The notes under the pieces: model-generated
Database searches by the model: none
Told to the model about the DNA's origin: nothing
Seen by the model: only the letters and a program-made list of their open reading frames with translations
Translations under genes and position numbers: made by a program
In this document: positions 11,001 to 38,627 of the stretch, in pieces
Numbering within the stretch: position 1 is the first letter of the stretch
Layout: each line of letters begins with the position of its first letter
From: Macrostomum lignano
Taxonomy: Eukaryota
Reading direction: 5' to 3'
Length of the DNA: 43,622 bases
NCBI GenBank assembly: GCA_002269645.1
Contig: NIVC01001983.1
Coordinates: 172,654 to 216,275 of the forward strand

Positions 11001-12248
11001 ATGCCGATAGTAGCGAGACTGACAGCTGCCACCGGAACGGTGCTGCTGCTTGCCGCGGTTCTGTGCCGGCTCTGCAATTCAAGCCGGCAGCCGCAGCAGC
11101 CGGGATTTGATGGCGACCAGGCGCTGCTGCGCGAGATCGAGTCCCAGCCGGCGGACCAGGTGCTGCTTCGGCTGGCCACTGGCGACAGCAGCATCGCCAA
11201 ACTGGCTGTTCAGCTGACTCAGCCAGCCAAGCAGCATCTGGTGCAGCGATTGTTCAATGGCAGCAGCCGGAAGATGCAAACTCTGCAGACTGGCATCGAT
11301 CTCTGCTGGTCGCTGGCTGGCGTCAGCTGCGTCTGCGCCCACCTGGAGAACAAGTCGGCCGGCGGGGAGGCCGTGCGGGACTTTCGCTGCGCCAGGGGCG
11401 TTCGCAGCGGTCGAGACTGCGGCGGCGGCGGCGGTGGCACCGGGGGTTGCGCCCAGTGCTCGGCCGAGTTCAAGCAGGCCGGACGGGACTGCTTCGGACC
11501 CGACTGCGCGGCCACCTGCCAGTGCCGTTGTCCCGGAGCCTCCTGGCCCTCTCAGATCCGGCCGTGCTCCTCCTGGTGCAGCCCAACGCGCGGCGGTCCG
11601 TGCTCGCCTGGCGCGGTGGCGGCGCAGCAGACAAGAGCAGCGAGCGAAGTAGCGGCGGACAGCCTGACTTCGAACCGGCTGTGGAACGGCGTCCTGGTGT
11701 GCGCCTTTCTGCTCATATGCCTCATTGTGGCCGCCTACGGCTGCCGCCTCTGCACTCACTGCTCCAAGCTGTGCTCCGGAGTCGCGCAGGCCTTCGCTTC
11801 GCTCCGAACTCGGCTGGGCCTCGATTTTGGCGAATCGAACCTTCGTATCGGCGTCGCTTTAAGCTACGACCGGGCCAGAGGCGCTGTAGGCGGAGCCGGG
11901 GCACACAACGACTATTTGGCAGATTTTGACGACACGGAAGACTATGACAGCAGCGAGGGTGGCGGTAGCGGCGGCGGAGCGGGCCGTCACGGTAGGCGAC
12001 GGCGGCGGCGAGACAGGCGAGGCCGCGAGCGCACCGGCTCCTTCCTGTCGCTGAGCTGCGCAGAGAGCATCAACGTCGTGTCGCCGACCGACCTCATCCT
12101 GCCGAGCTACCGGGAGCAGGCGCCCCCGCCCGGGCCCTTCAGCGCCGCTCCGCCAAGCTACGAGCAGGCGCAGCAGGAGCAGCAGCAGGACTTGCAGAAC
12201 CCGCCGCCGGCCTATTCGGAACTGTTTGAGCCGGGCGGCAGCAGCTGA
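11001..12248 (+). CDS. Intronless orphan type I membrane protein, 415 aa (signal peptide, Cys-rich ectodomain, one TM, PY-motif tail)
   Basis: Non-repetitive GC-rich 1248-nt ORF with ATG and TGA; hydrophobic N-terminus (TVLLLAAVLC); Cys cluster including CFGPDCAATCQC; TM GVLVCAFLLICLIVAAYG; tail LPSY, PPSY, PPAY. Confidence 0.75.
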   Translation: MPIVARLTAATGTVLLLAAVLCRLCNSSRQPQQPGFDGDQALLREIESQPADQVLLRLATGDSSIAKLAVQLTQPAKQHLVQRLFNGSSRKMQTLQTGIDLCWSLAGVSCVCAHLENKSAGGEAVRDFRCARGVRSGRDCGGGGGGTGGCAQCSAEFKQAGRDCFGPDCAATCQCRCPGASWPSQIRPCSSWCSPTRGGPCSPGAVAAQQTRAASEVAADSLTSNRLWNGVLVCAFLLICLIVAAYGCRLCTHCSKLCSGVAQAFASLRTRLGLDFGESNLRIGVALSYDRARGAVGGAGAHNDYLADFDDTEDYDSSEGGGSGGGAGRHGRRRRRRDRRGRERTGSFLSLSCAESINVVSPTDLILPSYREQAPPPGPFSAAPPSYEQAQQEQQQDLQNPPPAYSELFEPGGSS

Positions 12249-14119
12249 GTTGGTTGTCACGGCTTCCCCTTGCACTAGACAGCTAAAAGCAGAGGGACGC
12301 TGCACACGCATTGGCGAGACAGAAAGTTTTTCAGTTTTTTAGCAACAAATCCCAGGACTTCCCAGGAGCAAAGTTTCCACAAAATTTCTGCTGTTTCGAT
12401 ACTTTTAGTGGATTTGTTTCTACCAAATTTGTCTATGGCGGAACCCCACTCAGCGATGAGTGTGAAAGCAAATCTTTGCAAAGCTTGCCGGATCAAATTG
12501 GACAAAAGTCGCGTGATGGCGGCTCCCCTTGTTGCTAAAAAGTGAAAACTTACGGCGTCCCTCTGCTTCAGCAGTTCTGGTGCTCCTCGTGTGCTAATCC
12601 CTCAATTTCGTCCAACTGTTTCTAACGAAAACTGCCATTATTAAATCCCATTGTGTATTGTTTAAATTTTGAAACTGCGCCACCAAAATATCCCATTGCA
12701 TGCCAATAGCAGCGCTGCACCACACTCGCTAATTAATCTTCTGTCACAAGCGAACTGCAAGAATTCCACCATAACAGTGACGAGTTTTGAAGTCATGTCG
12801 AACCGGCCGACGAATTTGTTGTGTCCCGAGCTGCGGTCACTGGGTGTAGAGTAATTAGCGGCCACTTCCCGCAGCTAAAAAAGTTAATTTGTCAATTATT
12901 CGAGAGTGTGCAGAACTGGCTGTGTTGTAAGAGTGAAAAATGGCTGGGCCAAACCCGTGCAAAGTGGGCGATTTTTCTCCAACCAAGCAGCAATAGTGGC
13001 AAAACCAAAGTATTGTTGAAGAAAACCTGTCACCACTGCGCCTCCCCCCCCCAGCCGAGTTAGCGATCTACTGAATCCTTGTTGTTGCATTTTGATCTAA
13101 TCCTGGTCTCTTGGAAAACTCTAACCTATTTGATATAGTGTAACGAGTTCCACTGCCAATGCCATTTATTTTCTACTGGTTTCGCTTGCTCACTATATCT
13201 GTCTGTGTTTTTGAGCTGTCCATTCAGAAGTGCACACAGCAACATCTTTCAAGTTTCCACCCAGAAACCAATGGTCAACAAGTGGGCAGCTCTACGAGCT
13301 AATCCAACTCAAGCCATAACTCTCTACTCTCGGCTCACCAGCCTAAGCTGCATCACCCAGAACCGCGCGGGAGTGGTGTGAAGTTGGGGGGCTGAGAACA
13401 GTTGACCACTGGCTTCGGGATGGTGTAAATGTTATTGCTGAGTGTAAGTGCTAGTGTCCTATCAGTAATGAAGAGCAAACGTCCTCGACTCTCAGTAAGG
13501 TCCATATTTTGACTGATATGTATCATCCCGTATAGTCTAATTCCAATGTGTCGCTATACTTTACCAAGTATAAAAGTGTCCTTGTGCATTTCTGTGTATA
13601 CAAAGTAGCTCGTACATGTATGTTTATTAATAACATTGTCAATTGATTTACGTTGTAACTGTGATACAGTAATGTACAGACGGCCCCACAGAGAGCTTTG
13701 CTAAATATATTAAGTTGTATTCTATTAAAACTGAGAAAAAAATTAAATTTCTCCTGAGCCATTTTTTTGTTTATTTAAATTCAAAAGTTTTCTACTGCGG
13801 CTTTTAAGGCTGCTCAAGATTTGAGATTTGAGCAGTCCTTGGATCCGCAGAGCTGCATAAATTAGCGGCCAAATGTGCAGTTGCTTCAAGGTGTGCAGCT
13901 CTTGACCCGATAAAATCACAATTGTTAGTAATCGCGCAAAGTGATGTTTCAAGCAAAAAAGCATCAGCCCTGGAAGCCAGCTATCCTTGCTAAGACATCG
14001 ACATCCCCTGTGAGCTTTGGCATCAAAGCCTCCCAATTAAGCCATGACTTACCCCTGACTCTTTATTCTCCCTTTGATTCTACCATGATTTATCAATATT
14101 AGATAATTAATATTCCCGA

Positions 14120-14293
14120 AGGTGGGGCAGAGCAACTCAAGCGGTAAACGCATCTCCATGCACATGCCTGACGATTAGAAAGTCAAAAGGGCCGCTGTGC
14201 ACCCCGTGTGAGCGACTGCATGAATGCGTGCCTGAGTACAGCATTGGCGAGCTTGTGTGCTGATGTCCACCGTCAGCACCGGTTTTTGACTAG
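14120..14293 (+). mobile_element. SINE-like dispersed repeat, copy 1
   Basis: Aligns by eye with 23067-23212 (minus): CACATGCCTGACGATTAGAAAGTCAA..CTGTGCACCCCGTGTGAGC versus TACATGCCCGATGATAGGAAAGTCAA..GTGTACACCCTGTGTGAGC. A-box-like CAACTCAAGCGGTAA; 3' hairpin (14257-14279) followed by TTTTT. No clear B box. Confidence 0.5.
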
Positions 14294-14644
14294 TTGTGTA
14301 GAGTGAATAAATATGATATTCTAATTTTCAAGAAAAGAAATGTGCTTCTTGCATATTTCCCGTGTTCAGTATAAGATGCAATTATAAATCCTTTGAAATT
14401 CAACAGCGTTGACGTGGCGCCTGCCTTTGACTTTCTCAGTTTGGCCTTGGTGAGAAAAATTCTGCAAAGGATTTTTTGGCTACGTAATTATTCATACCTT
14501 TGCTGATGGCTTTGTACTATAGTATAATTGCAGACGGTGCGCAAGGGTTGCATGCATGAAGACATGAAGATTAAGCTAAAAAACTCGAAGTGGACTCAAA
14601 TCTAAGGCATCTGCACCAGACTCAAGGTGAACTCGAAGACATTA

Positions 14645-15135
14645 TTATAAGACTTGGACATCAGACTAGAGGAGTGCTCAAAGAAAACTATAAAACTTGG
14701 ACATCAGACTAGAGGAGTGCTCAAAGACACAATTATAAGACTTGGACATCAGACTAGAGGAGTGCTCAAAGACACAACTACAAGACTTGGACATCAGACT
14801 AGAGGAGTGCTCAAAGACACAACTATAAGACTTGGACATCAGACTAGAGGAGTGCTCAAAGACACAACTACAAGACTTGGACATCAGACTAGAGGAGTGC
14901 TCAAAGACACAACTATAAGACTTGGACATCAGACTAGAGGAGTGCTCAAAGACACAACTATAAGACTTGGACATCAGACTAGAGGAGTGCTCAAAGACAC
15001 AACTATAAGACTTGGACATCAGACTAGAGGAGTGCTCAAAGACACAACTATAAGACTTGGACATCAGACTAGAGGAGTGCTCAAAGACACAACTACAAGA
15101 CTTGGACATCAGACTAGAGGAGTGCTCAAAGACAA
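14645..15135. repeat. 45-bp minisatellite (AAGACTTGGACATCAGACTAGAGGAGTGCTCAAAGACACAACTAY), about 11 units
   Basis: Direct reading; gives the RLGHQTRGVLKDTTI pseudo-ORF. Confidence 0.93.
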
Positions 15136-15869
15136 CTGTACATAAGTTGTGTCTGGAACAGCCAGAATGTACATCAGAGATGACAAAATTCGTAAGATAG
15201 AAGCGAATGTCGAGCATACATTAGGGTAAAATGATTTGTGGATTGAGGGGGCGGCAGTCGCTAAACTCCTGCAGCGGCTTAAAAAACAAGAAATCAACAC
15301 CTTATTGGGATTCTGAGTCTCGCTGAGCCGCTTAATGAGGGCGGGGGGGGGGCGGCGAATGCAGAGGCTCAGACAGCCAGGTGCACAGAAATTGAAACAA
15401 AAAAACACTCACTGTCTCACACGCCACGCAGCCAGCTCAAGCAGATGGTCGCCCCCCACCTGCCGATCGCAGGAGCATCACCTGATGCCGTGCAACGAGG
15501 TCTCCCCCCCGACAATGTTCGCTCACTGGGCAAGAGAGGCTTTCTGTCTATCGACTCTGACAGGGCCTGACAAAAGCAATTCCTTACCAAGAGTGTTGGC
15601 TTTCAAATCCTACTGACGAGCTCCTTGCCCTGCACGCTGTCCCAAGCACGCATCCCCGCTCGGCAGGTATGAAATTGATTCGAGAGAAATCGCGTGCGAC
15701 TCAATGGAGGTCCCAGCCTCCAAACGATAAGCTTTATTAATGAGAGTGATGAGGTTTTAATGGCACGCTTAGTTGAGATAGAACTGCTGAATTTATCAAG
15801 TACTGCGATGACAGATGGGTAAAGCACTCTTTCTCATGGGTTAACAGGCCTTCGCAGTCAGCTGCACCC

Positions 15870-16845
15870 TCTATGACCATTGACCGAGAAGGCTGACTTA
15901 CAACCTCTATGATGGGGAAGTCTGCTACACTGCTACAGTTTCACCCTCTATGACCGAGAAGTCAGGTACAGTTACACCCTCTATGACCGAGAAGTCAGAT
16001 ACAATTACACCCGCTATGACGACGAAGTCAGCTACACTGCTACAGTTACCCGCTGTGATTGAGAAGCCAGCTAGTTACACCCGCTATGACCGAGAAGTCA
16101 GCTACAGTCACACCCTCTATGATTGAGAACCCAAGCTATACTCTATGAACCGAGAAACCCACTACACCCTTTATGACCGAGAAGTCAACTAACAGTTTCA
16201 CCTTTTTTGACCGAGAAGTCAACTAACAGTTTCACCCTCTATGACCGAGAAGCCAACTACAGTTTCACCCTCTATGACCGAGAAGTCAAGTACAGTTTCA
16301 CCCTCTATGACCGAGAAGTCAACTACAGTTCTACCCTCTATGACCGAGAAGTCAACTACAGTTCCACCCTCTATGACCGAGTAGTCAACTACAGTTTTCA
16401 CCCTCTATGACCGAGAAGTCAACTACAGTTTCACCCTCTATGACCGAGAAGCCAACTACAGTTCTACCCTCTATGACCGAGAAGTCAACTACAGTTCCAC
16501 CCTCTATGACCGAGTAGTCAACTACAGTTTTCACCCTCTATGACCGAGAAGTCAACTACAGTTTCACCCTCTATGACCGAGAAGCCAACTACAGTTCTAC
16601 CCTCTATGACCGAGAAGTCAACTACAGTTCCACCCTCTATGACCGAGTAGTCAACTACAGTTTTCACCCTCTATGACCGAGAAGTCAACTACAGTTTCAC
16701 CCTCTATGACCGAGAAGTCAACTACAGTTCCACCCTCTATGACCGAGTAGTCAACTACAGTTTTCACCCTCTATGACCGAGAAGTCAACTACAGTTTCAC
16801 CCTCTATGACCGAGAAGTCAGCTAGCTACACCCGCTATGACCGGT
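15870..16845. repeat. 33/34-bp minisatellite (ACCCTCTATGACCGAGAAGTCAACTACAGTTTC) with a 133-bp 4-mer higher-order repeat
   Basis: Variant TTCTACCC recurs at 16329, 16462 and 16595 (133-bp spacing); degenerate left end. Confidence 0.92.
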
Positions 16846-16929
16846 GTGGGTGTACATATCCGTATGCATGCTCAGGACACAGAAGAATGAGAATGACTTT
16901 TTCCTTCCTCGCTTGCTGAGGGCCGCTGG

Positions 16930-17500
16930 CAGAGTTTCTATACGAGCGTAATAAAAATCAATAACAATAACAAAGCCATCTTGTACATGAATAGTCTGGA
17001 TATAGACCAATTTCTTCAGAGCGCAGGATCATATCTCATCAGATTTAATTTAGTTTAATCAGTAGTAGTTACGCATGAATTCTCCGTATTCGTTAATAAA
17101 TTAATTTTGTACACACGGCAATTAACCTGGTTAATCAACGAAGGAAAAATGACAAAGAGCAGATGCGCACTGAGCTCCCCTACATAGGAAAGCCAGCATG
17201 TACTTTTCGTATGCACTAATCACATGACACTAGTAAGAGAGCGAATTTTCGACACGCTACTTATAGTAATAAACTAAAGCGAAACTTATATAAAATTTTT
17301 ATATTATAGATAAAAGAATTCACACAGGTAAAGAGAGCTGGATCACATTGGCATGTTCTGAGTGGGCTGGTAAAAATATTAATTAATATTCACTGATCGT
17401 AGCATTTCTAGGATACTTGTGCCGAAAATTGGATCATATTGCAAGATATGAGCACATTGAGAACTCAAGCCCGCTTATAGATTACTAAGGAGACAGTTTT
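16930..17500 (+). pseudogene. Possible heavily decayed Penelope-like element fragment (RT thumb to GIY-YIG end)
   Basis: Broken peptides in the expected order: EFSVFVNKLI (NGFPxxFINK-like), TELPYIGKP, RILV, ELKP. Many stops and indels; motif resemblance only. Confidence 0.3.
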
Positions 17501-17599
17501 CTTAATTTCTCATTTTTAGTTTCTTTTCAGTGCCAATGCGAATTGAGCTTTTAAAGCCGGCGAAAAGATCATATCTATGAGTATGATCTGGGACAAATC

Positions 17600-18340
17600 C
17601 ACTACACCCATTTATGACTGGGAATTCAGCTACACCCTCTATGACCAACGAAAAGTTGGTTAGTTACACCCTCTATGACTGAAAAATCAGCTACACCCTC
17701 TATGAATGAAAAATCAGCTACACCCTCTATGAATGAAAAATCAGCTACACCCTCTATGAATGAAAAATCAGCTACAACCTCTATGAATGAAAAATCAGCT
17801 ACAACCTCTATGAATGAAAAATCAGCTACACCCTCTATGAATGAAAAATCAGCTACACCCTCTATGAATGAATAATCAGCTACACCCTCTATGACTGAAA
17901 AATCAGCTACACCCTCTATGAATGAAAAATCAGCTACACCCTCTATGACTGAAAAATCAGCTACACCCTATTTGACTTACAATCAGCTACACCCTTTATG
18001 ACTGAAAAAACAGCTACACCCTCTATGACTGAAAAAACAGCTACACCCTATTTGACTTACAATCAGCTACACCCTTTATGACTGAAAAAACAGCTACACC
18101 CTCTATGACTGAAAAAACAGCTACACCCTATTTGACTTACAATCAGCTACACCCTTTATGACTGAAAAAACAGCTACACCCTCTATGACTGAAAAAACAG
18201 CTACACCTATTATTATGACTAAGAAATTAGCTACACCCTCTATGACCGACGAAAAGTTAGTTAGTAACACCCTGTATGACTGGAAAATCAGCGACACCCT
18301 CTATGACCGACGAGAAGTCTACAACACCCTGTATAACCGG
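17600..18340. repeat. 27-bp minisatellite (AGCTACACCCTCTATGAATGAAAAATC)
   Basis: Direct reading; shares the core ACACCCTCTATGA with the 33-bp array. Confidence 0.92.
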
Positions 18341-18495
18341 TGAGAAGTAATTTTAATAATCTTTGATAACTAAAGCCGGACATGGTCCTTTACTAATATA
18401 AAAAGCCACAAGCTTAACATAGCAACCAATAATTAGCCCAGTCTATATAACTTAGCCTCAGCGCATCAGCCAGAAGTTCGCGCCAACCACCGGTT

Positions 18496-18888
18496 TCATA
18501 GAAAATAAGGCGTAGTAGTTTTGTCCGGCACAGTTCGCTGATCGTCCGGCACAGCGTTGAACAGTTTCGGCTCCCGACCTCCGGCGCTGTCCAAGGCCAG
18601 CACAGCGGCCACGTTGCCGCACCGGTAGCAGTAGTTCGGGGCCGACCAGACTGTCACCAGGGCATCGTTGAATACAAATTTATAGCCCTCCTGCACCAGC
18701 TGATGGGCTCGGCAGATCAGTTTCAACTGATTAGCGCTCATAAATTCGGCTGTCACGCGCGGGCCAAACAGATAGCCGGCGCCGCGCGGCGACATGGCGA
18801 AACCGTCGACATCGTCCGGGTCGCTCCAGACCAGATCGCAGAACGGGCCCTTGTGCGGGATCTCCTGCTGGCGGTCTATGGTGCGAAT
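18496..18888 (-). CDS. PPP6C: Serine/threonine protein phosphatase 6 catalytic subunit, exon 3 (last)
   Basis: [24 protein letters not shown]...[10 protein letters not shown]...[12 protein letters not shown]...[14 protein letters not shown]...TTPYFL stop; the TTPYFL end is PP6-type (PP2A ends TPDYFL). Acceptor CAG 18891-18889. Confidence 0.95.
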
Positions 18889-18914
18889 CTGCGGCGGCGG
18901 AGGGGGTAGCTCTT

Positions 18915-19285
18915 GCTTGGCGAAGGATAGGGAAAGTACCAGATGCCCTTTTAAGAATAGAGGAAGTACCCGATGCCCTTTCAAGAAGAGGGAAAGTACC
19001 AGATGCCCTTTTAAGAATAGGGAAAGTACTGGATGCCCTTTTAAGAACAGGGCAAGTACCCGATGCCCTTTGAAAAAGCAGGGTAAGTACTCGATGCACT
19101 TTGAAAAAGCAGGGCAAGTACTCGATGCACTTTGAAAAAGCAGGGCAAGTACTCGATGACCTTTGAAAAAGCAGGGCAAGTACTCGATGACCTTTGAAAA
19201 AGCAGGGCAAGTACTCGATGACCTTTGAAAAAGCAGGGCAAGTACTCGATGACCTTTGAAAAAACAGGGCAAGTACTCGATGTCC
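18915..19285. repeat. 31-bp minisatellite (GACCTTTGAAAAAGCAGGGCAAGTACTCGAT) in PPP6C intron 2
   Basis: About 12 units filling most of intron 18889-19324. Confidence 0.92.
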
Positions 19286-19324
19286 ATTGAAAAATCATAG
19301 AACTGTCAAGGCCGGTACACTCAC

Positions 19325-19595
19325 CTGGTCAAGAGTTCGAATCTCGGGCGACAGGCCGCCGTGGACGCACAGGATGGACTCATCAATCAGGGCAGCAATG
19401 GTGAGCAGGTCGAACACTCGGCAGCAGGCCTTCCACGGATTGGCGTTGCCGTATTTGTTGATGCACTCGTCATAAAAGCCGTACACAGTGGTGATCTGAC
19501 GCGATTCATGATTGCCCCGGAGCAGCGTAATGCGATCGGGATACTTGGCCTTCAGCGCCATCAGGTAGGTCCAAGTCTCCAGAGAGTAGTGACCC
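19325..19595 (-). CDS. PPP6C: PP6 catalytic subunit, exon 2
   Basis: GHYSLETW...[19 protein letters not shown]...[15 protein letters not shown] (GNHE and HGG metallophosphoesterase motifs). Acceptor CAG 19598-19596, donor GTGAGT at 19324. Confidence 0.95.
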
Positions 19596-19649
19596 CTGGG
19601 ATTAAGGAGTTCAATGCATAGATTCAATTAATATGCTGCTAGTGATTTA

Positions 19650-20800
19650 ACTAGGAGGCTAAACTCGGAGTCTAGGACCTTAAACTAGGAGTCTAGAGTC
19701 TAAAACTAGGAGTCTAAAGTCTTAAACTAGGAGTCTAGGGTCTTAAACTATGAGTCTAGGGCCCTAAATTAGGAGTCTAGGGTCTTAAACTATGAGTCTA
19801 GGGCCCTAAATTAGGAGTCTAGGGTCTTAAACTATGAGTTTAGGGTCTTAAACTAGGAGTGTAGGGTCTTAAACTAGCAGTAGAGTCAAATTAGGAGTCT
19901 ATGGTCTTAAACTAGGAGTCTAGGGTCTTTAACTAGGAGTGTAGGGTCTTAAACTAGGAGTGTAGGGTCTTAAACTAGCAGTAGAGTCAAATTAGGAGTC
20001 TATGGTCTTAAACTAGGAGTCTAGGGTCTTTAACTAGGAGTGTAGGGTCTTAAACTAGGAGTGTAGGGTCTTAAACTAGGAGTGTAGGGTCTTAAACTAG
20101 GAGTGTAGGGTCTTAAACTAGGAGTGTAGGGTCTTAAACTAGGAGTGTAGGGTCTTAAACTAGCAGTAGAGTCAAATTAGGAGTCTATGGTCTTAAACTA
20201 GGAGTCTAGGATCTTTAACTAGGAGTGTAGGGTCTTAAACTAGGAGTGTAGGGTCTTAAACTAGGAGTGTAGGGTCTTAAACTAGGAGTGTAGGGTCTTA
20301 AACTAGGAGTGTAGGGTCTTAAACTAGGAGTGTAGGGTCTTAAACTAGGAGTGTAGGGTCTTAAACTAGCAGTAGAGTCAAATTAGGAGTCTATGGTCTT
20401 AAACTAGGAGTCTAGGATCTTTAACTAGGAGTGTAGGGTCTTAAACTAGGAGTGTAGGGTCTTAAACTAGCAGTAGAGTCAAATTAGGAGTCTATGGTCT
20501 TAAACTAGGAGTCTAGGGTCTTTAACTAGGAGTGTAGGGTCTTAAACTAGCAGTAGAGTCAAATTAGGAGTCTATGGTCTTAAACTAGGAGTCTAGGATC
20601 TTTAACTAGGAGTGTAGGGTCTTAAACTAGGAGTGTAGGGTCTTAAACTAGCAGTAGAGTCAAATTAGGAGTCTATGGTCTTAAACTAGGAGTCTAGGGT
20701 CTTTAACTAGGAGTCTAGGGTCTTTAACTAGGAGTGTAGGGTCTTAAACTATGAGTTTAGGGCCTTAAACTAGGAGTGTAGGGTCTTAAACTAGGAATTT
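19650..20800. repeat. 21-bp minisatellite (GGGTCTTAAACTAGGAGTGTA) in PPP6C intron 1
   Basis: About 55 units; variant block TAGCAGTAGAGTCAAATTAGG recurs about 7 times. Intron 19596-20912. Confidence 0.93.
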
Positions 20801-20912
20801 AAGAATAATATATATTTAGAGCACACAACTAGCCCCTTTAAGCACCAATAAGTCACTAATTCCTGAACAGAGTAGGTATACCACAATGAGAGCGCAAATT
20901 ATTAACACCTAC

Positions 20913-21160
20913 CTGTCAACAAAGTCGCCCAGAAACACATAGTTGGTGTCCGGCAGTTCCCCGCCGGTGCGAAACAATTCCAATAAGTCGTAGAACTGTC
21001 CGTGAATATCGCCGCACACTGTCACAGGCGTGCTAACTGGCTGAACGTTGCACTCTTCAATTAGCAGGTCGCTAACGTAGTTGCACAGTTTGTACAGGTC
21101 GCCCTCGGGCAGGTACTTGCAGTCGCGGGCAATCTCAATCCATTTGTCCAAGTCGCTCAT
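20913..21160 (-). CDS. PPP6C: PP6 catalytic subunit, coding exon 1
   Basis: [19 protein letters not shown]...[12 protein letters not shown]...[10 protein letters not shown] (GDIHG and GDFVDRG motifs). Donor GTAGGT at 20912, phase 2. Exons 248+271+393 = 912 nt = 303 aa plus stop. Confidence 0.95.
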
Positions 21161-21242
21161 TGTTTCTGATTGACAATGAACTTTGTTTTACTAGGCATGA
21201 AATTTTAACACCAATCAGGTGATTTAATTATGACTCCAAAAC

Positions 21243-21805
21243 CAAGATACAACGGCACTCCTTCGGATACAATGGCACTCTCTCAGATACAATGACACTC
21301 TCTCAGATACAATGGCACTCTCTCAGATACAATGGCACTCCCTCAGATACAATGGCACTCCCTCAGATACAATGGCACTCCCTCAGATACAATGGCACTC
21401 TCTCAGATACAATGGCACTCCCTCAGATACAATGGCACTCTCTCAGATACAATGGCACTCTCTCAGATACAATGGCACTCCCTCAGATACAATGGCACTC
21501 CCTCAGATACAATGGCACTCCCTCAGATACAATGGCACTCCCTCAGATACAATGGCACTCCCTCAGATACAATGGCACTCCCTCAGATACAATGGCACTC
21601 CCTCAGATACAATGGCACTCTCTCAGATACAATGGCACTCTCTCAGATGCAATGGCACTCTCTCAGATACAATGGCACTCCCTCAGATACAATGGCACTC
21701 CCTCAGATACAATGGCACTCTCTCAGATACTATGGCACTCTCTCAGATACAATGGCACTCCCTCAGATACAATGGCACTCCTTTAGATACATTCCACCAG
21801 ATACT
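21243..21805. repeat. 20-bp minisatellite (CTCAGATACAATGGCACTCC) in the predicted 5' UTR intron of PPP6C
   Basis: About 28 units; source of the MALPQIQWHSLRYNGTPSDT pseudo-ORFs. Confidence 0.93.
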
Positions 21806-21834
21806 TTTAAAGACACTGGAATCAGATTACATAC

Positions 21835-21902
21835 CCTGGCACTTCAACTCCTAATAACGTAAGCCACTTTCCGATACTGCCTGACCCCAGACCCCTTGTG
21901 AA
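21835..21902 (-). other. PPP6C: Predicted 68-nt non-coding 5' exon of PPP6C
   Basis: Preceded on the minus strand by a long U-rich tract ending TTCAGTTCTGCAG (AG at 21904-21903), followed by donor CAGG|GTATGT (21834). Matching acceptor ATCAG at 21170-21166, 5 nt before the ATG. No ATG in the exon. Splice signals only, no transcript evidence. Confidence 0.55.
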
Positions 21903-21989
21903 CTGCAGAACTGAATCACAAAAATAAAGCAATAACATGGATAAAAAAAGTAACTTCGACTGCACGACAACAAGTTTTATCTAATGTGT

Positions 21990-21995
21990 TTTATT
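21990..21995 (-). promoter_or_regulatory. Candidate polyadenylation signal AATAAA for MCEE
   Basis: First canonical AATAAA seen on the minus strand downstream of the MCEE stop (about 435 nt). Confidence 0.5.
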
Positions 21996-22429
21996 ATAAC
22001 AAGCAAAACTACATTAAAATTTCTATGGATTCGAATGTACATATTAGCGTGTACACAGGATAGGGAAAACACACACAACACACACACAGTTCAGACAATG
22101 AGAAGGTCTAATTACTGTACCCTAAGAGAGTGAGCAAGAACTAAAGAAGTACAAAAAGCGGATTAAACTAAAATGAGATTGTATCAATAGTAGTCTCTAT
22201 AGAAAGTAAAATTTAAAAATGGTAAGAGAGGGCCAATTAACAAACACTAATCTATTTATCTATATTTATACTTGTAGAGAAGGGGTCAACCAAGCGGGTC
22301 TTTTGAAACTTCCCTCTGCCCTCCATCTCTAATTTGGCCCGCAGTCGTGAGCTGGATATTTTGCCGATCCCTGTAATAGAGTAACGGGTTTCTACGAACT
22401 TGTCAGTATCTTCAATCAGTTATAATGCA

Positions 22430-22978
22430 CTACTTAGCGTGTCGCTTTTTCCATTCCTCGTCCGGCTGCTCAAGCTCGGTGAGCACGCCGTTAACATCCT
22501 TGGGATGCAGGAACACCACCGGATAGCCGTGGGCGCCCGTTTTGGCTTCGCCGCCAAGAGCGCGCACCTTGTGCTTAGGCAGGTCAGCAATCGCCCCGGA
22601 GATATTGTCAGTCTCAACGCAGATATGATGGATACCGCCAGCCTTGTTCTTGGCTAGGAAATTTGCCACCGGGCTGTCCGAGCCAAGCGGATGCAGCAGT
22701 TCCAGTTTGCAATTGTCCAGCTCAACAAACACCGTAGTGACGCCGTGCTCTGGCAGGTCCTCCGGCTGGCTGACCTTGGCGCCAAACACTTTACTAAATA
22801 GGTCGCTGGATGCTTTCAAATCTGGCACAACTATGGCCACGTGATTGAGACGGGTGAGATTCCACGACCGTTTGCCAGCCAGGCAAGCCGGGCTCGAGTG
22901 CAGCAGAGCCCGACTGGCGGCTGCGGCCAACACTGAGCGGGACTGGCCTAATAGGGACAGGCGACCTAGCAGGGACAT
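22430..22978 (-). CDS. MCEE: Methylmalonyl-CoA epimerase, mitochondrial precursor (intronless, 182 aa)
   Basis: R/L/S/A-rich presequence, then RLNHVAIVVPDL...LPEHGVTTVFVEL...KLELLHPLG..SP..FL.KNKAGGIHHICVETDNI...GAHGYPVVFLHPKD.NGVLTELEQ; VOC-fold metal ligands H, H, E as in MCEE. Confidence 0.95.
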   Translation of the reverse strand: MSLLGRLSLLGQSRSVLAAAASRALLHSSPACLAGKRSWNLTRLNHVAIVVPDLKASSDLFSKVFGAKVSQPEDLPEHGVTTVFVELDNCKLELLHPLGSDSPVANFLAKNKAGGIHHICVETDNISGAIADLPKHKVRALGGEAKTGAHGYPVVFLHPKDVNGVLTELEQPDEEWKKRHAK

Positions 22979-23066
22979 TGTACCGACTGGAGCTGAGTTT
23001 GCAGCGGGTTGAGCAATGATTATTCATTTGTATTTTGCCATGCAATCAGAGCAGCTCTTTCTGTAG

Positions 23067-23212
23067 GCACATACAAGATGCTGTTTGTATGCAGGAATGC
23101 ACTCATACATATGCTCACACAGGGTGTACACTGTGGCCTTGACTTTCCTATCATCGGGCATGTACACTCAGTGTCTTGGGGTTGGTCAGACTCATTAACT
23201 GCTAAGCTACTT
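23067..23212 (-). mobile_element. SINE-like dispersed repeat, copy 2, directly upstream of MCEE
   Basis: Homologous by eye to 14120-14293; head carries the tRNA A-box-like GTAGCTTAGCAGTTAA (minus strand, about 23210-23195). Confidence 0.5.
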
Positions 23213-26200
23213 CACACTCAATGTACCCATTTTACTATTACACAATCATAATCACAACTAAAGTGAAGAGAAGTGTTATTTGTGCTATAAAATACTTTTG
23301 CATTGTTCTTAATTAATGCTTAATTTTTTAAGTAAATTTTTTATTTTTATGTACTTTTAATAATTCAAAATTCAAAATTATCTCTGTCGAAATTGATGGG
23401 AAAGTTTCAGACTTTATAACCATACCAATAAGAGCAATAGTTTTTCTATAAGCTTATCAATAGTTGTTGTAGCTTTTTTATAGCCATAGTCAAATATGCT
23501 TTGGACCAATTGTGTCCTTAACTTTGTTTGAGATTGTATCACCACAGAAAGGTCATTCTATATAAGTTGGATACTAGTCCAAATGTATATTGTAGTTTTT
23601 TAATAATTTACTCAAGGCTTAAAAATATTTAGTCATAAGAATTTAAATGTATTATGCTACTAATACATCAGCTACCAACTTTTTGTAGTCTAGTAAACAA
23701 TTATTAATCTTTCAAGGAATTTTCATTTCATATAACTTGCTTTTTTAATTGATATTTTGATAATTATTTTAGGTAAAAAGTATAAAAGAATATTGTTTAT
23801 TTTTGTACAAATGAAATTTATATATTTCTCATTGTTCATATATTATATACAGGAATTTTTGCCTTCTGAATTATGAATAAAACTATAAGCTTAGGAGTAT
23901 AAGATTAAAAAATGTAAATTATTTTTTATTAAATTTAAATTTCATTTTATTGTGCTTTTAGTTTTATTGAGACATTTCTAGTTTCTATATTAATATAATA
24001 TTATAATATTTCATTTGCTTTTTATATGTATCTATTTTTTCTAAATAGACATAATGAGAATACAAGTATACAATTTAAGGAAATTCAAGTAGTTAAATTA
24101 TTACTTAATAGAACTATACTTTCATATCAATTGTTTCCATTAAAAATTACTAAAATTATCTTACTAAATCTAAAGTATGGTATAAAAGTAAATTGTGCAC
24201 TTTTAATTTATGCTATTTTAAAATAAGCAAAAAATAGGCCTATCACTACTTGGGTCTTAGTTAAAATTAATGTAATTCTAATTGTACAATATTGATCATG
24301 TCAAAGAATATTCTAGAAATTTTAGACTAATTCAATTTAAGGTCAATAAAATCTGCCTAATTTTCCAATATTGCTAAAACTTTTAAATAAATACTAAGAA
24401 GTTAAAAAAATATTTAAAATGGCAAGGATGGTCATTCTTTAAAACTGATAATATGCTAGCTGTTATTATGTTATTTAAGAATTTTGAAGAAGTAGCATTT
24501 CTTGAGAGTTAAAAAATGTATTGACTATATAATACTCAAATGAAAGGTTTTTTGAAAAAGATATTTTATTCTACCAAAAGATTTTCTACTTAAAAATCAC
24601 TTAGATCCTATCCCTTAGAATTATACTATAGATTATAACTAGTATAATCAAATAGTACAGACTTTACAAAGTACAAAAAGACTATAAAGTTTAAATGTTA
24701 TAATGCTATAAATTGAAAACAAAATATACTTGTTTGCCCTTTTTATACATTGGATTTTTTTACTTTGACTAAGGCCAAAGGGCTAAGACAAAATATAATG
24801 AACTAGCAAAAGGTAGCTAATATATTAGTTATTAGTATAAAAGGATTAATATAAATGCAAATGAAAATAAAATAATTATACTATAGGGCATATACCTAGT
24901 CTACCACAATAAATAAAAAATTAAATGAAATTATTGGCAGAAAAATTGCAATATAATGAAATTTACATTAAGTTTTATAGAAATTAGTTAAGATATAGAG
25001 AATATATATGCATCTATGTCCACTGTTTGTTGCCTACTTTGTAAAATATTTAATACTGAGTCTTATTTAAATAGTTTAATGGTGATTTTTAATTTTAAAC
25101 TTATTATGCATGCCATGACAATCTAATAAGTTAACAACATCAATGCCCATTGTCTAGGCAGTAATAGATTTTAACTATGAATATAATATAAATACTTCAT
25201 ATTGCTTTGCATAGTAATCAAACATGATAATGATATATATAATATAGGCCTATATATGCATATATTATATAATTTATTATGAGTAGTATATGTTGTATTT
25301 TATATTATTAGACTAGCATTATCCCTTTAGCTCCTACCATAACTGTATGCATTATAAAAATGTCATTAAAAGCATAATGTTATAACATTATAACAATATT
25401 ATAACTAAGATGATATTAGAAAAATCAATCTCAGGATTGACAGAATATGCCTATTATGGGATTTTGTGACAACTAATTGTAGTAGGTTTAAATTGCCTAG
25501 GCTAGAGGCTTAGCATTAGCAGTAAGGTAGGGATTGGACAAAATTGAATTTTTGCTATTTTTGAAATTCAATATTTTTGACAATATAATATGAAATTTGA
25601 TTAAGACTATGAAATATTTAATTCAAATAAGACAAAACTAAAAACTAAGAATAGGCCTAGTAGTTCTGTTGATACAATACAAATTATACAATTTGATGAT
25701 TTATATATTTGAAAAATAATGTAAACCTCATGCAAATTTTCTAAAAATCACCAAAACCTTTATTCTTTAATTTATAAAAACATAGACATTTTTAGGGTGC
25801 ATCCTTTTCTTTCCTATATACTAAAAATGAGTTGTTTGTACGTAGCTATGTGATTGATTTCATAAAAAAGGGCTTAACCAATTTTCTTCAAACTTGCACC
25901 ATTCGATCAGAAATTTTCCTGGGAACTAAGATGGTACATGCATCTTGGCTAAGAAATTGCTCAATGTTAAAGGAATTAAATATTCGAAAAAAATGCTTTT
26001 TGCAAAGGTCAAGCAGCTCTTTCAACTTGAAATGCATTGTAAGAATAATAGAGAAAAACCTGACTGACTGACTTCTGATTGTGATAAAGATTGCATCACA
26101 ACAAGTTGAAAACAGTGCCAAAGAAAAGCACACATGACTTGATTGAAATTGCGTAACCAAATTGCTAACTTAAATTGAGACTGATACTGGCTGACTGAGA

Positions 26201-26290
26201 AATTGATTATGTCATAACTTTTTACTTTAACCACTTCCTGTAAGAATTGAATTATAAGGGCAACCTAGTTCATGTTCTCCAATTGATAAG

Positions 26291-26350
26291 AGATAGCCTA
26301 GATGCGAACAGACTGGACTGCTAATGTAGCAACCTGGGTTGGAATCTTAG
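26291..26350 (+). pseudogene. Degenerate tRNA-Ser(GCT)-like sequence or tRNA-derived SINE head
   Basis: TAGCCTAG (A-box-like), TGGACTGCTAAT (Ser-GCT anticodon-loop context), GGTTGGAATC (B box with one mismatch). Stems do not pair well, so not a functional tRNA. Confidence 0.4.
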
Positions 26351-26399
26351 TAGTGCAGAATAATTTTTTTATTAAAACACCATAAAAAATACAAAATGC

Positions 26400-26865
26400 T
26401 AAACATTAAAGAGCCACCATGTCAAACTTTAAAGAGTCACCATGTCAAACATTAAAGAGCCACCATGTCAACTATTAAAGAGCTACCATGTCAAATATTA
26501 AAGAACCACCATGTCAAACATATATGTGACTCTGTCAAATGTTAAACACATAAAAGAGACACCATGTCACACAAAAGGGAGCTACCAAGTCAAACATAAA
26601 AGAGACACCATGTCAAACATAAAAGAAGCACTGTGTAAAACAGAAAAGAGGCACTGTGTCAAACATAAAAGAGCCACCATGTCAAACTTTAAAGAGCCAC
26701 CATGTCAAACATTAAAAAGTCACCATGTCAAAACTTGAAGAGCCACCAAGTCAAACATAGAAGAGCCACTATGTCAAACAATAATGAGCCACCATGTCAA
26801 ACATAAAGGAGACATCATTTCAAATGTAAAAAGAAGTGTCATGTCAAACATAAACAAGCCACTAT
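26400..26865. repeat. Degenerate 23-bp minisatellite (TAAAGAGCCACCATGTCAAACAT)
   Basis: Direct reading, about 20 diverged units. Confidence 0.85.
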
Positions 26866-29274
26866 AAAGCTAAAGTAATTGTCGCACTAGGCCTAGCAGC
26901 TACTTGTTTTCTAGTGGATGTTTGCTATTTAAGGATAGATAATTGCTATCAAGGGGATGCTTGCTTTCTGAGGGATGCTTGCTATCTATCTGGGGTAACT
27001 CACAAGGGTAACTTGGGATGCTTGCTATTGGAATGATGCCTGTGCTTGCTCTTGAGAGGTGGAGGGTACTTGCTATCTGAGAGGGGATTGCTAGGCCTAG
27101 CTATCTATAAAGGATTCTTTGTATCTAAGGATGCTGCCTATCTGGGGGATGCTTGCTATCTAGGGTCTTTGTTACTTGTACAGAGCAGAGTTTCTATCCA
27201 GATGTTCCCCATCGGGGGGCGAAGATTGCAGTCATTTTTCTAAAATCTCTTAATATAGGACAGGTGACAGTGACACTAAAATGAGTTGAATTTTTGGCAC
27301 GAATTTGATTCATTTTGAATGCAATGTGTTTATATGTTTGTTCAGTTAATCTATACCATATTTAGAATATTGGAATTCAACCTAGGGGCTCCTTATTTTA
27401 CTTTTTTATATCTTGGATTTTTGGCACTTTAAAATGGGATATAGTTAAGTAAAATTACAAGGGCAGGAAACAAATAAATATAAATAGGCCGAACGAACCT
27501 AATGTCCTAAATAACAATATTGCATTGAGCCTATTGAGAAATTCATTTGCTTTGGTGCCTCTTGTTGTTGTTAGTGTTAGCTGCTTCGTATCGAACTGTA
27601 CATGCATCCATATACTAAAGATGTAAAGTATTTTATGTATCAATTAAATCTCCACACTTTTTATGATGTGTCCGGCATTCTTAAATATTATTGTCTTGTT
27701 GTTTAGTTAGTAGTTATTCAGTAGTGAGTTTCTATTTCCGCGATTCTTACTGTACGTACTTTACTACTATTGTTTTACTGTATCCTAATTCCTATCGTAT
27801 TTCAAATGCAAATGCTCTGTGTTTTGGTGTTAGTTCTCCTGTGCGCCGTAGTAGTTGTAGTTGTAGGGTAGCATAGCCGTTCCAGAGTTCCAGTCGATCC
27901 AGTTTTAATTCAGTAATAGATATAGACATTATTTAGAATTTATCTTAATTACTTTGACTACATAGATTGTTCAGATACGAATACAAATATATAAATGAAA
28001 TGAATTAAGGCGCATTGCACCCACAAGCCAATAACGCAATCGTTCATTCATCTGTCATCACAACGAAAATAAGGCGATTCTTTGAATTCTTGGACTTCAA
28101 GAAACTTATTTTACATTGGCAACCATGCCAGCAAAGAAACGCTGGATCTGCACATTTACAGCCAAGTCAAGTATATTTATTATTGCCTATTCTACCCTGC
28201 CTATTGACTACTGTCTATGCCTAATGGATCATTAAGACAATTGACAATATTTTTTGGTCAGCTATTTTCAATAATATCAATCTGCTTATTGAAGAACTGG
28301 TATTCATTTGGACCTAATTGCTATTATAAATTAATTATCTTGCTTGACTAGTTCTCATTGAAATTTAGTCCTATCAACATATTATTATTAAATGTCAACA
28401 AGATCTCATCAACCGAACAAGGGATCTTCAAAACCGAACATGCAAGTTACTTTCGTTTTTACTGTCTCATGGGGACTATATTCCAAGAGTCTATAAAAGT
28501 GACATACCATTTAAAAGAAGGTATTCTTATCTACAAAATGAGATAAAGTTTTGACAATCTGCTCGATAGATACTCAAGAAAATTAGCAATATTGATAGAA
28601 ATTTTTGAAATAATATGCGTTTTGAAGTTTTTTCTTGATTTGGGATGTCTGTAGAAAAATTGCTCTACAGACCACTATTTTTAACTTACATTCAAAACGA
28701 AACACTTTTTGAATTCAGTGTTAAATTTTCTACAAAGTGATACAACACACATACCAATCTGATAAATAGTTCAGCAAAAAATGCCACTGTTCGGTTGATG
28801 ATACCAAATTGACTGTTCGGTTCGGTTTTCAGATCTCGGGATCATCAACCGAACAGAAAAATCTTCAAAACCGAACGAACAAAAATGGTCCAAAAAAACT
28901 TATTTTTCGCTCGCTTATTCTACCTTACAATAAAAAAGATCTTTTTTAAAAAAGAAAAACTCATTTAAGCCACGTAATTGCAAATATTTCGAGCTTAAAA
29001 ATGTACCAATTTTTATGCAAAATACATAAGAGGATTATTCCATTCTGACAAAATCTTGCTATTAATTGCTTCTATTTCTACTAAAAGTAGCTAAAAGCAA
29101 CATATATATTTTCTTTTCAGAATTCCGCAGCATAAAAAAGAAAATCGAATCAACAAGACAGGCCAAGTTGGATGTGCTAGGCGGCCTACTATAGGCCTAG
29201 GCCTAATGGTAGCCGCTTTACTGTTAAACGATTTAAGAGTAAAGCCTATTAAACGTCTAATTTAATTTATAGTA

Positions 29275-29416
<142 letters not shown>

Positions 29417-29436
29417 CCACAGGTACAATACAAAAT

Positions 29437-30727
29437 TTGATACATGTAGATTGGTGGACTGAAGCAGTTAGAGAGGCGCCCACATGTAGATTGATGGATA
29501 GAAGCAGTTATAGAGAGGCGCCCTTGATACATGTAGATTGATGGATAGAAGCAGTTAGAGAGGCGCCCTTGATACATGTAGATTGATGGATAGAAGCAGT
29601 TAGAGAGGCGCCCTTGATACATGTAGATTGATGGATAGAAGCAGTTAGAGAGGCGCCCTTGATACATGTAGATTGATGGATAGAAGCAGTTAGAGAGGCG
29701 CTCTTGATACATGTAGATTGATGGATAGAAGCAGTTATAGAGAGGCGCCCTTGATACATGTAGATTGATGGATAGAAGCAGTTAGAGAGGCGCCCTTGAT
29801 ACATGTAGATTGATGGATAGAAGCAGTTAGAGAGGCGCCCTTGATACATGTAGATTGATGGATAGAAGCAGTTAGAGAGGCGCCCTTGATACATGTAGAT
29901 TGATGGATAGAAGCAGTTAGAGAGGCGCTCTTGATACATGTAGATTGATGGATAGAAGCAGTTAGAGAGGCGCTCTTGATACATGTAGATTGATGGATAG
30001 AAGCAGTTATAGAGAGGCGCCCTTGATACATGTAGATTGATGGATAGAAGCAGTTAGAGAGGCGCCCTTGATACATGTAGATTGATGGATAGAAGCAGTT
30101 AGAGAGGCGCCCTTGATACATGTAGATTGATGGATAGAAGCAGTTAGAGAGGCGCTCTTGATACATGTAGATTGATGGATAGAAGCAGTTAGAGAGGCGC
30201 TCTTGATACATGTAGATTGATGGATAGAAGCAGTTATAGAGAGGCGCCCTTGATACATGTAGATTGATGGATAGAAGCAGTTAGAGAGGCGCCCTTGATA
30301 CATGTAGATTGATGAACAGCCGTTAGAGAGGCGCCCATGATACATGTAGATTGATGGATAGAAGCAGTTAGAGAGGCGCTCTTGATACATGTAGATTGAT
30401 GGATAGAAGCAGTTAGAGAGGCGCCCACATGTAGATTGATGGATAGAAGCAGTTAGAGAGGCGCCCTTGATACATGTAGATTGATGGATAGAAGCAGTTA
30501 GAGAGGCGTCCTTGATACATGTAGATTGATGGATAGAAGCAGTTAGAGAGGCGCTCTTGATACATGTAGATTGATGGATAGAAGCAGTTAGAGAGGCGCC
30601 CACATGTAGATTGATGGATAGAAGCAGTTAGAGAGGCGCCCACATGTAGATTGATGGATAGAAGCAGTTATAGAGAGGCGCCCTTGATACATGTAGATTG
30701 ATGGATAGAAGCAGTTAGAGAGGCGCT
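29437..30727. repeat. 45-bp minisatellite (TTGATACATGTAGATTGATGGATAGAAGCAGTTAGAGAGGCGCCC)
   Basis: About 29 units with +2 and -6 nt variants; source of the ASLTASIHQSTCIKG pseudo-ORFs. Confidence 0.95.
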
Positions 30728-31412
30728 TTTTTGAAAATTGAATAGAAAAGAGGTTTGACATTATTGTAAAAATTTAATGTACTTTACCTTAAAAGTTGGT
30801 TGAATTGTAAAGTAAATTTGGTAGACTACACTTTCTTGTTAATGCGCTTTCGATTGATAGGCCTTACTCGAGAGCTTTACTCCAGCATATATTTCAAAAA
30901 TGGCCTAAGGATAAAAAAGATAGATACTCAAGAGCCTTGCTTTCTTTGAGCTAGCCTATGCCTAGTTTAAAAGCTGGCCTGTAGTGATGCAATCCTAGGC
31001 CTACCAATGTAAGAGTCAACCTACGAGTACTTGAGCTGTGGGATTTCCAACCAGCCAATGGGAATCAGACCGCGAGTTTTTACTCTTGGATGACTAGGCC
31101 TAACGTGAACTCCCACATTCACATGCCACTGCCAGGCTCCATAACCTTATATTTGAGCAGAACTAGGACCATTGCGCGTAGGCCTACTGATCGGTCTAGG
31201 CCTCATCAATAGAACCGGTATCGGCGCAGCGGGGGGGGTGAGGCAGATCGAGAGGGCTGCTGCCCCGGATGACCCTCCGGACCACCCTACCATCCCTTCG
31301 AGGGGTATGAGCAGCTCGTTGTATTGCGAGATTTTAGCTTAATGCACTGCTCTAATTTTAAAAATTCGCTGGGGGAGGGGGGTCACCACCCAAACACCGC
31401 CCTCTTAATCAG

Positions 31413-31465
31413 CAAGGGCGGATTTACTTGGAACCCCCCAAAATGAAACTCTAGATCCGCCACTG
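31413..31465. mobile_element. 53-bp miniature TIR element with an 8-bp TSD
   Basis: TTAATCAG at 31405-31412 and 31466-31473; imperfect TIRs CAAGGGCGGATTT and reverse complement of the right end CAGTGGCGGATCT (10/13). Superfamily unassigned. Confidence 0.6.
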
Positions 31466-31784
31466 TTAATCAGAGGTGCAGCATCGCAACTGATTTGAAC
31501 CAACATCGAAAGCAAAAATACATTTAGCCTATCGGCCATTTCCGTCACTAGTTAGGGCCTAAAGCAAAACGTAGGCCTATAGTACTCGTATAGGCCTAAA
31601 ATACCTAAATACTTCAATTTTAAAGAATACAAATTAAAGATACATATCTACATAATTTAATTCTTAACTGTACATGAACTCCTAGTTTTCTCTAAGAACT
31701 CATCCTAGACTTATAGTTATCAATTATTATAACTAACATAATTAGCCCTAATTAGTGTTTCAGTGAATTAAAAACAGCAAAATG

Positions 31785-38267: not shown

Positions 38268-38627
38268 ATGGCAGCAATTAGAAGCAAGAAGGAGAGAGTC
38301 CAAGCCGCAGTGGACAGTGTAATTGAAAGAATTCGCACTGGCAAAGAGTGCAATTATCGAAAAATTGCTCAAGAATTTTCCGTACCTACCACCACCGTTT
38401 ATGACAGAGCTCGCAGGCTGATGAACGGGCTGAAGGTGACGGAAAAAAATACTGCCAAGCGGTATTTGACGCAGGCCGAGGAGCGAGTCTTCTGTGATGC
38501 AATCAAGCAGGCCGCTCGACAGCAGGTCCCCATCACGAGGAAGAAGCTGCTCGAAATGGCAAGTGAGACTGTCCGCAACATCGGCGTTTCGAATGAGGAG
38601 CGCTGCGGTTTGCGTGACGCCACCAAG
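38268..38627 (+). CDS. pogo-type transposase, exon 1 (HTH_psq-like plus CENP-B-type HTH DNA-binding region)
   Basis: MAAIRSKKERVQAAVDSV...NYRKIAQEFSVPTTTVYDR (psq-like HTH) and YLTQAEERVFCDAIKQAARQQVPITRKKLLEMA (second HTH). 360 nt, donor AAG|GTAGGC at 38628. Confidence 0.75.

Follow-up and report, generated by a model that had tools for sequence, protein, structure and literature searches.

A candidate MCEE–PPP6C operon in the flatworm Macrostomum lignano

Are two neighbouring genes on the same strand of the Macrostomum lignano genome, one encoding methylmalonyl-CoA epimerase (MCEE) and the other the catalytic subunit of serine/threonine-protein phosphatase 6 (PPP6C), transcribed together as an operon, or does the downstream gene, PPP6C, possess a promoter of its own? 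The question arises at the end of scaffold NIVC01001983.1 (assembly Mlig_3_7, GCA_002269645.1), of whose 216,275 nucleotides (nt) the terminal 43,622 constitute the window, i.e., the whole stretch of DNA analysed here; scaffold positions are obtained by adding 172,653 to the window positions used throughout. An earlier note on this DNA had proposed that MCEE and PPP6C are co-transcribed and that their common precursor is resolved by spliced leader (SL) trans-splicing. The arrangement agrees with what has been published on operons in this species and, judging from the sequence, we lean slightly towards the operon.

The spacer and its fit to known operons

In M. lignano, about 30% of genes receive one and the same 35-nt leader, CGGTCTCTTACTGCGAAGACTCAATTTATTGCATG, and operons comprise 10,458 genes (15%) when a 1-kb threshold is applied to the repeat-adjusted distance, 75% of the operons holding two genes (PMC8629364). 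Wudarski et al. 2017 mapped leader reads, as well as T-fill reads adjacent to poly(A), to the same assembly and counted 28,273 trans-spliced genes, nearly 7% of the transcripts that were assembled being precursor mRNAs with several trans-splice sites (PMC5730564). The genome-wide occurrence of SL trans-splicing and of operons in this organism (PMC5730564, PMC8629364) bears out the earlier note, which had counted on a flatworm origin of the DNA and on SL trans-splicing in flatworms. Operon members in M. lignano are recognised as adjacent genes on one strand, with no opposite-strand gene between them and a repeat-adjusted distance below 1,000 bp, of which the downstream one carries leader reads at its 5′ end and which, ideally, share a bridging precursor (PMC8629364). 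MCEE and PPP6C are adjacent, both lie on the minus strand with no opposite-strand gene between them, and the 1,270 nt that separate the MCEE stop codon from the PPP6C ATG amount to 723 nt without the 547-nt minisatellite that they contain. An acceptor motif [T/C]TNCAG with no upstream cis donor, which is a supportive rather than a defining feature, is found at 21903; this is the top trans-splice acceptor motif of the species, present at 9,551 of 21,754 real sites (PMC8629364). The pair further shares with M. lignano operons the tandem repeat within the spacer, a conserved housekeeping gene in the downstream position and the commonest size, two genes (PMC5730564, PMC8629364). No structural difference from these operons is seen, and the pair departs from them in that the public annotation keeps MCEE and PPP6C in separate transcriptional units.

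Downstream of MCEE, the minus strand carries a series of signals, and those listed in the earlier note lie where it had placed them. The AATAAA at 21995-21990 is the sole canonical poly(A) hexamer from the MCEE stop to the PPP6C ATG, and it is the same in the two other copies of the locus described below. By reading, the stretch 21989..21909 holds a candidate cleavage region, then GU-rich sequence (TTGTTGTCGTG) and then a U-rich tract, and it could be a downstream element for the poly(A) site and, at the same time, the polypyrimidine tract for the acceptor that follows. This acceptor, CTGCAG (21908-21903), is a candidate SL acceptor that fits the M. lignano trans-splice motif and lies 87 nt past the AATAAA. 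T occupies 23 of the 40 nt upstream of it (0.575), which ranks it first of all 170 YTNCAG sites when the two strands of the window are taken together. No GT[A/G]AG donor is found on the minus strand from 23100 to 21161 and, because MCEE is also intronless, the 21903 acceptor is a true orphan, as the note had described it; its use as a cis acceptor for a donor within MCEE was considered and rejected for want of such a donor. There follow a putative 68-nt, ATG-free, non-coding first exon of PPP6C (21902-21835; 61 nt in the other two copies), which is taken from the note's model and is unremarkable in itself, and a candidate donor, GTATGT (21834-21829), the only one of GTA.G type between the 21903 acceptor and the ATG. 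The minisatellite (21791-21245) consists of 27.4 copies of a 20-nt unit with 95% matches, spans 547 nt and contains no ATG on the minus strand. Beyond it lie an alternative acceptor, CCTAG (21193-21191; CCCAG in the other two copies), after which the exon would open with TAA, and AATCAG (21171-21166), which is followed by AAACA and the ATG at 21160 and would act either as a cis acceptor, as the note had it, or as a direct SL acceptor. An opposite-strand gene in the spacer was considered and rejected, the plus-strand open reading frames (ORFs) there being translations of the minisatellite only, and no gene is called between MCEE and PPP6C in the paralogous loci.

Altogether, these signals suggest a scheme in which transcription would begin upstream of MCEE and run through both genes. 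The MCEE mRNA would then be cleaved and polyadenylated some 15-35 nt past the AATAAA at 21995, while the downstream RNA would be rescued when the single 35-nt leader of M. lignano is trans-spliced to the orphan AG, for which the CTGCAG at 21903 is favoured. The minisatellite-bearing stretch 21834-21166 would subsequently be removed as an intron of the 5′ untranslated region (UTR). Species, gene identities, gene order and strand and the signals themselves are established by the sequence, while co-transcription, the poly(A) site and the acceptor that would be used, and addition of the leader to PPP6C are inferred.

In the SL2 operons of C. elegans, downstream mRNAs are produced by 3′-end cleavage coupled to trans-splicing. 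The locus resembles these operons in its layout, in which the poly(A) signal of the upstream gene precedes a trans-splice acceptor by approximately 100 nt and a U-rich element separates the two. It is unlike them in that M. lignano has a single 35-nt leader ending in AUG, with no division into SL1 and SL2 (PMC8629364, PMC12582326), and in that M. lignano spacers may hold hundreds of bases of minisatellite. By the literature, the pair therefore stands outside the SL2 type, in which a second leader serves the downstream genes. A flatworm leader ending in AUG is shared with the operons of the parasitic flatworms, such as Schistosoma mansoni and the cestodes, in which acceptors are common to cis- and trans-splicing and intercistronic distances in S. 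mansoni show a median of 99 bp and average 233 bp (PMC12582326).

The two genes in three copies

Judged by its domain and its closest named relatives, the upstream gene is MCEE, in agreement with the earlier note. Its coding sequence (CDS; 22978..22430, minus strand) is an uninterrupted single-exon ORF of 182 amino acids plus stop, and the protein carries a Glyoxalase_4 domain (glyoxalase/VOC; Pfam E 2.4e-22), an N-terminal presequence that reads as arginine-rich, and 54-68% identity to animal proteins named MCEE, which are mitochondrial methylmalonyl-CoA epimerases. The closest named relative is a protein of the tapeworm Spirometra (58% identity). The gene is publicly named BOX15_Mlig004497g1 (UniProt A0A267EKD3; gene id via PMC12896417), and the exact protein belongs to a two-member cluster, the NCBI member of which (P0241) is encoded three times in GCA_002269645.1. 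The 434 nt from the stop codon to the AATAAA (22429..21996) are a putative 3′ UTR, whose extent follows from the single AATAAA.

The downstream gene is, on the same kinds of evidence, a PPP6C orthologue of the PP2A-like phosphatase family, as had also been proposed. The gene model comprises three coding exons on the minus strand: 21160-20913, from the ATG at 21160 to a GTAGGT donor; 19595-19325; and 18888-18496, stop codon included. The resulting protein of 303 amino acids equals the NCBI proteins PAA61981.1 and PAA84707.1, contains a full-length Metallophos domain (Pfam E 6.5e-46), shares 74-79% identity across 99-100% of its length with animal serine/threonine-protein phosphatase 6 catalytic subunits (PPP6C/PpV), and is identical in all three genomic copies. 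Its public names are BOX15_Mlig006564g1 and BOX15_Mlig005896g1 [Macrostomum lignano], and the CDS is annotated in the two other copies and not in that of the window. The M. lignano protein itself did not appear in a protein search with PPP6C and was retrieved through an exact cluster look-up. Each PPP6C intron holds an array of its own (21-nt and 31-nt units). The closest PPP6C found outside Macrostomum in a metagenome assembly, P0007, is 79% identical and intronless; it lies on a 5.6-kb contig (ENA ERZ25070786, ctg53160l; locus L004) without MCEE, where it adjoins an opposite-strand dioxygenase gene.

The MCEE–PPP6C locus is present in triplicate in the assembly. In addition to the window's own copy (L002, 100% identity over window positions 32999..12430), L001 lies on NIVC01000364.1 and L003 on NIVC01001983.1 at 140128-160697, inverted, convergent and about 37 kb from the window copy on the same scaffold. 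L001 and L003 are each approximately 98.3% identical to the window across 24452-21245. The triplication is consistent with the duplicated large chromosome or the neopolyploidy described for the DV1 line, and the inverted pair formed by the window copy and L003 may be an assembly artefact.

Comparison of the three copies reveals 15 difference events in 1,474 nt upstream of MCEE, 2 in the 549 nt of the MCEE CDS, 2 in the 434 nt of the putative 3′ UTR up to the AATAAA, 7 (including 3-nt and 7-nt indels) in the 161 nt from the AATAAA to the donor (21995-21835), and none in the 248 nt of PPP6C exon 1. The 161-nt stretch is thus more variable than the region upstream of MCEE (Fisher p = 0.004, with small numbers). 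This pattern fits a constraint that ends at the poly(A) signal and is followed by unconstrained spacer, UTR or intron, and it counts mildly against a conserved core promoter within 21995-21835. AATAAA, CTGCAG, GTATGT and AATCAG-AAACA-ATG are unchanged in the three copies, as expected anyway at 98% identity. The minisatellite is 272-291 nt longer in both paralogous loci, which amounts to about 14 extra copies (about 41 in all). Further differences are clustered at 21191-21200 on the minus strand, 31-40 nt before the PPP6C ATG, where they alter AG acceptors; L001 has an additional TTTTCAG.

The 5′ end of MCEE also differs between the copies. A short leader (22979..23003) precedes the ATG, as the deposited 5′-partial CDS P0241 (NSAPVGT-MSLL...) begins 21 nt before it. 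The MCEE frame stays open for seven further codons upstream of this deposited start, and the MCEE transcript model therefore begins within two bases of the CDS start. In L003 (9995-10000), CGCAG stands immediately before the implied transcript start; at this place (window 22999-23003, minus strand), CGCTG is found in the window and in L001, with T at 23003. Because the deposited 5′-partial CDS begins directly after an AG in L003, MCEE is itself probably SL trans-spliced, with CGCAG as the acceptor. This likely acceptor may be intact in one copy (L003) and lost in the other two through the A/T difference at 23003.

Where PPP6C transcripts would begin

If a leader is joined to PPP6C, the site of joining has to be identified. 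Four AGs were considered as leader acceptors: CTGCAG at 21903, ATTCAG at 21911, CCTAG/CCCAG at 21191 and AATCAG at 21166. The final 15 nt of the M. lignano leader, CAATTTATTGCATG preceded by T, would be followed by TTCACAAGG or TTCTCAAGG at 21903, by TTCTGCAGTTC at 21911, by TAAAACAAAG at 21191 and by AAACAATGAGCG at 21166, and the modelled cis junction 21835/21165 would join ...GAAGTGCCAGG to AAACAATGAGCG. The consequence for the leader AUG would differ from case to case. Joined at 21911, it is in frame with the PPP6C AUG and is stopped after 20 codons, upstream of that AUG; at 21191, it meets an immediate TAA; at 21166, it opens an ORF of 3 codons (MKQ-stop), the stop of which overlaps with the PPP6C AUG. 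At 21903, the 7-nt indel shifts the reading frame between copies, and the 61-nt exon of L001 and L003 gives a 14-codon ORF that ends 24 nt before the PPP6C AUG. Flatworm leaders reportedly end in AUG in most cases and provide the initiator for some mRNAs only. Because of this, and because the context of the leader's AUG is weak (U at -3), the reading frames rank the four acceptors only weakly. The site at 21903 is favoured by its match to [T/C]TNCAG and by its pyrimidine tract, which is much the strongest (T fraction 0.575 versus 0.35).

Further information on the 5′ end is provided by the deposited PPP6C CDS, which is complete (303 residues), whereas that of MCEE is 5′-partial. If the annotation pipeline works as we suppose, the ATG is therefore preceded by an in-frame stop in the PPP6C transcript model. 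This fits the in-frame TAG of the 68- or 61-nt exon, the junction at 21190 with TAA as its first codon, or an unspliced 5′ UTR, and it fits less well a transcript cut at 21165.

An operon could also exist in a form that departs from the note's exon structure, with the leader joined near the ATG, at 21191 or 21166, in which case the 68-nt "exon" and its donor would be chance sequence within a spacer of about 780-805 nt (about 230-260 nt without the minisatellite). Repeats are common in operon spacers, and the operon signal of the species appears only after repeats are subtracted (PMC8629364). In addition, the junctions at 21190 (TAA) and 21165 (MKQ-stop) neutralise the leader AUG more cleanly than the 21903 site does in the window, and both the 7-nt indel with four substitutions between the copies and the off-consensus donor make a chance origin of the 68-nt stretch easier to accept. 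However, neither 21191 nor 21166 fits [T/C]TNCAG, and the pyrimidine tract of each is weak (0.50 Y at 21166); a cut at 21165 would be expected, on the same supposition about the pipeline, to give a 5′-partial product of 304 residues, where 303 are annotated; and one would expect use of a strong orphan acceptor such as 21903 when the same pre-mRNA contains it, according to Conrad et al. 1993 as cited in PMC8629364. Measured from the AATAAA, the distance to 21903 is 87 nt and that to 21191 and 21166 about 260-280 nt after repeat subtraction. Among trans-spliced neighbours, repeat-subtracted distances show a peak near 100 bp (PMC8629364), and the spacer from the cleavage site to 21903 would be roughly 60-75 nt, within this published mode. 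Joining near the ATG seems to us unlikely.

A second alternative is that PPP6C is driven by its own promoter in the spacer, the two genes being merely close neighbours. One version places a TATA-like element, TATAATAAAA, at 21998-21989, in overlap with the poly(A) signal, and transcription would start near 21965; a very short outron would then precede 21903, where the transcript may still be trans-spliced, and this would constitute a "hybrid" arrangement. Another version relies on an A/T-rich CATAATTAAAT at about 21234-21224, past the minisatellite, and transcripts would start near 21200 and carry a short 5′ UTR that is not spliced. Such a promoter would account for the separate transcriptional-unit ids, MCEE and PPP6C each being a "g1", and for the complete PPP6C CDS, which implies a transcript model that reaches at least an in-frame stop upstream of the ATG. 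Although 45% of the M. lignano genes conserved with human are trans-spliced (PMC8629364), the remaining 55% of conserved genes are not, and published reporter-driving regions reach no further than 2 kb upstream of the start (PMC5730564), so compact promoters are usual in this species. Yet short same-strand spacing is characteristic of trans-spliced pairs, and pairs that include a non-trans-spliced gene show single-peaked distances without the 100-bp peak (PMC8629364). Moreover, no other unique sequence is as poorly conserved across the three copies as the candidate promoter stretches, and the TATA-like matches come from reading of the letters. The earlier note had argued that there is almost no room for a promoter. 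The 87-nt gap between the AATAAA and the acceptor is real, but the argument is conditional, because 1,270 nt separate the MCEE stop from the PPP6C ATG: it requires that 21995 be the MCEE poly(A) signal and 21903 the 5′ end of PPP6C. We regard a separate promoter as a serious possibility, albeit one that we would not expect to prevail.

Several observations weigh against the operon or against its proposed exon structure. The transcriptional-unit ids differ, Mlig004497.g1 for MCEE and Mlig006564.g1/Mlig005896.g1 for PPP6C, each a g1, and therefore no bridging unit has been assembled for the pair in the public annotation; this is weak counter-evidence, because units tend to break in the repeat-rich spacers of operons, to whose length repeats add substantially (PMC8629364). 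The TATAATAAAA around 21998-21989 could, by reading, equally act as a TATA-like element. The 68-nt stretch, with its 7-nt indel and four substitutions relative to L001 and L003, varies more between the three copies than any other unique stretch; the GTATGT donor is off the enriched motif of the species, in which cis donors are mostly GT[G/A]AG (PMC8629364); the polypyrimidine tract of the 21166 acceptor is weak (50% Y); and the leader AUG joined at 21903 in the window would open a 33-codon ORF that runs across the PPP6C start in another frame. The 68-nt exon with its intron is also one of at least four acceptor choices. While the published sequence-level features of an operon are all present, the exact exon structure of the earlier note does not follow from them, and we consider it tentative, indeed rather doubtful.

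The arrangement was not found in two parasitic flatworms, in the flanks that were covered. No gene was found within 10 kb downstream of Spirometra MCEE, nor any within 8 kb upstream of Paragonimus PPP6C, so that adjacency of the two genes was not found in either region, which again speaks against the operon. The longest contigs carrying Spirometra MCEE and PPP6C are unequal in length, which suggests that the two genes lie on different contigs. PMC12582326 does not list the pair with the conserved flatworm operons, either in its text or in its supplements. The MCEE–PPP6C operon, if it is one, is probably specific to the M. lignano lineage.

The surrounding window and the meaning of the pair

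The remainder of the window is marked by an extraordinary load of minisatellites (45 TRF rows), whose copy numbers vary between the paralogous loci. Examples are found at 1001-2487, 8714-9677, 14632-15134, 15933-16843, 17665-18307, 18929-19294, 19660-20796, 29437-30726, 31786-36194 and 38727-41725, and much of the right-hand end consists of a 148-nt satellite (30 copies) and a 26-nt array (115 copies). About 13.5 kb downstream of PPP6C, and on the same strand, lies an acetyl/propionyl-CoA synthetase-like gene (3495-4973, minus strand, extending below 3495; ACAS_N E 4e-23, AMP-binding E 1e-46) with a 14-nt minisatellite in its intron; like MCEE, it encodes an enzyme of short-chain acyl-CoA metabolism. 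A GC-rich ORF of 415 codons on the plus strand (11001-12248) has no Pfam match, contains a hydrophobic segment and, near its C terminus, PPxY-like motifs (PPSYEQA, PPPAYSEL); it could represent a lineage-specific gene for a membrane protein or have arisen by chance in sequence of 61% GC. Several further plus-strand ORFs, within 38268-38648 and 41891-42891, flank the 26-nt minisatellite and gave no significant Pfam match, one having a hit below the cut-off and the others none; by eye, they resemble helix-turn-helix and transposase remnants.

Neither a copy of the spliced-leader sequence nor any Rfam family was found within the window. Exact-protein look-ups of MCEE (P0121, P0241) and PPP6C (P0242) returned NCBI genome copies only and no RNA-derived contigs, and an exact-pattern scan of the metagenome collection for the PPP6C start and for an internal 33-mer of MCEE gave no match. 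PPP6C, MCEE and the Mlig gene ids were not found in the supplements of PMC5816591, PMC5730564, PMC5173321 and PMC12582326, and a literature search for the Mlig gene ids returned no paper apart from PMC12896417, which names the MCEE id.

It may be asked whether the three copies have diverged in function. The variable length of the minisatellite, which could lie in the 5′-UTR intron or in the intercistronic spacer, together with the copy-specific changes (T/C at 21193, the 7-nt indel and A/T at 23003), might make the three operon copies differ in processing or translation. We consider this very improbable; if true, it would show concretely that duplicated operons sub-functionalise in a neopolyploid. 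A weaker reading would have MCEE and PPP6C co-regulated because their functions call for it.

The pair is one candidate among the thousands already catalogued, in an arrangement that about 15% of M. lignano genes normally show. Because SL operons are already documented at that scale, its significance beyond annotation is very small. Public browser tracks with SL reads and T-fill poly(A) reads exist for M. lignano. If confirmed, the pair would add another two-gene operon, apparently lineage-specific, and a small example of a large minisatellite lying between the poly(A) site and the downstream CDS with expression undisturbed. For a PPP6C reporter in this transgenic model, the promoter of choice would then be the region upstream of MCEE rather than the spacer.

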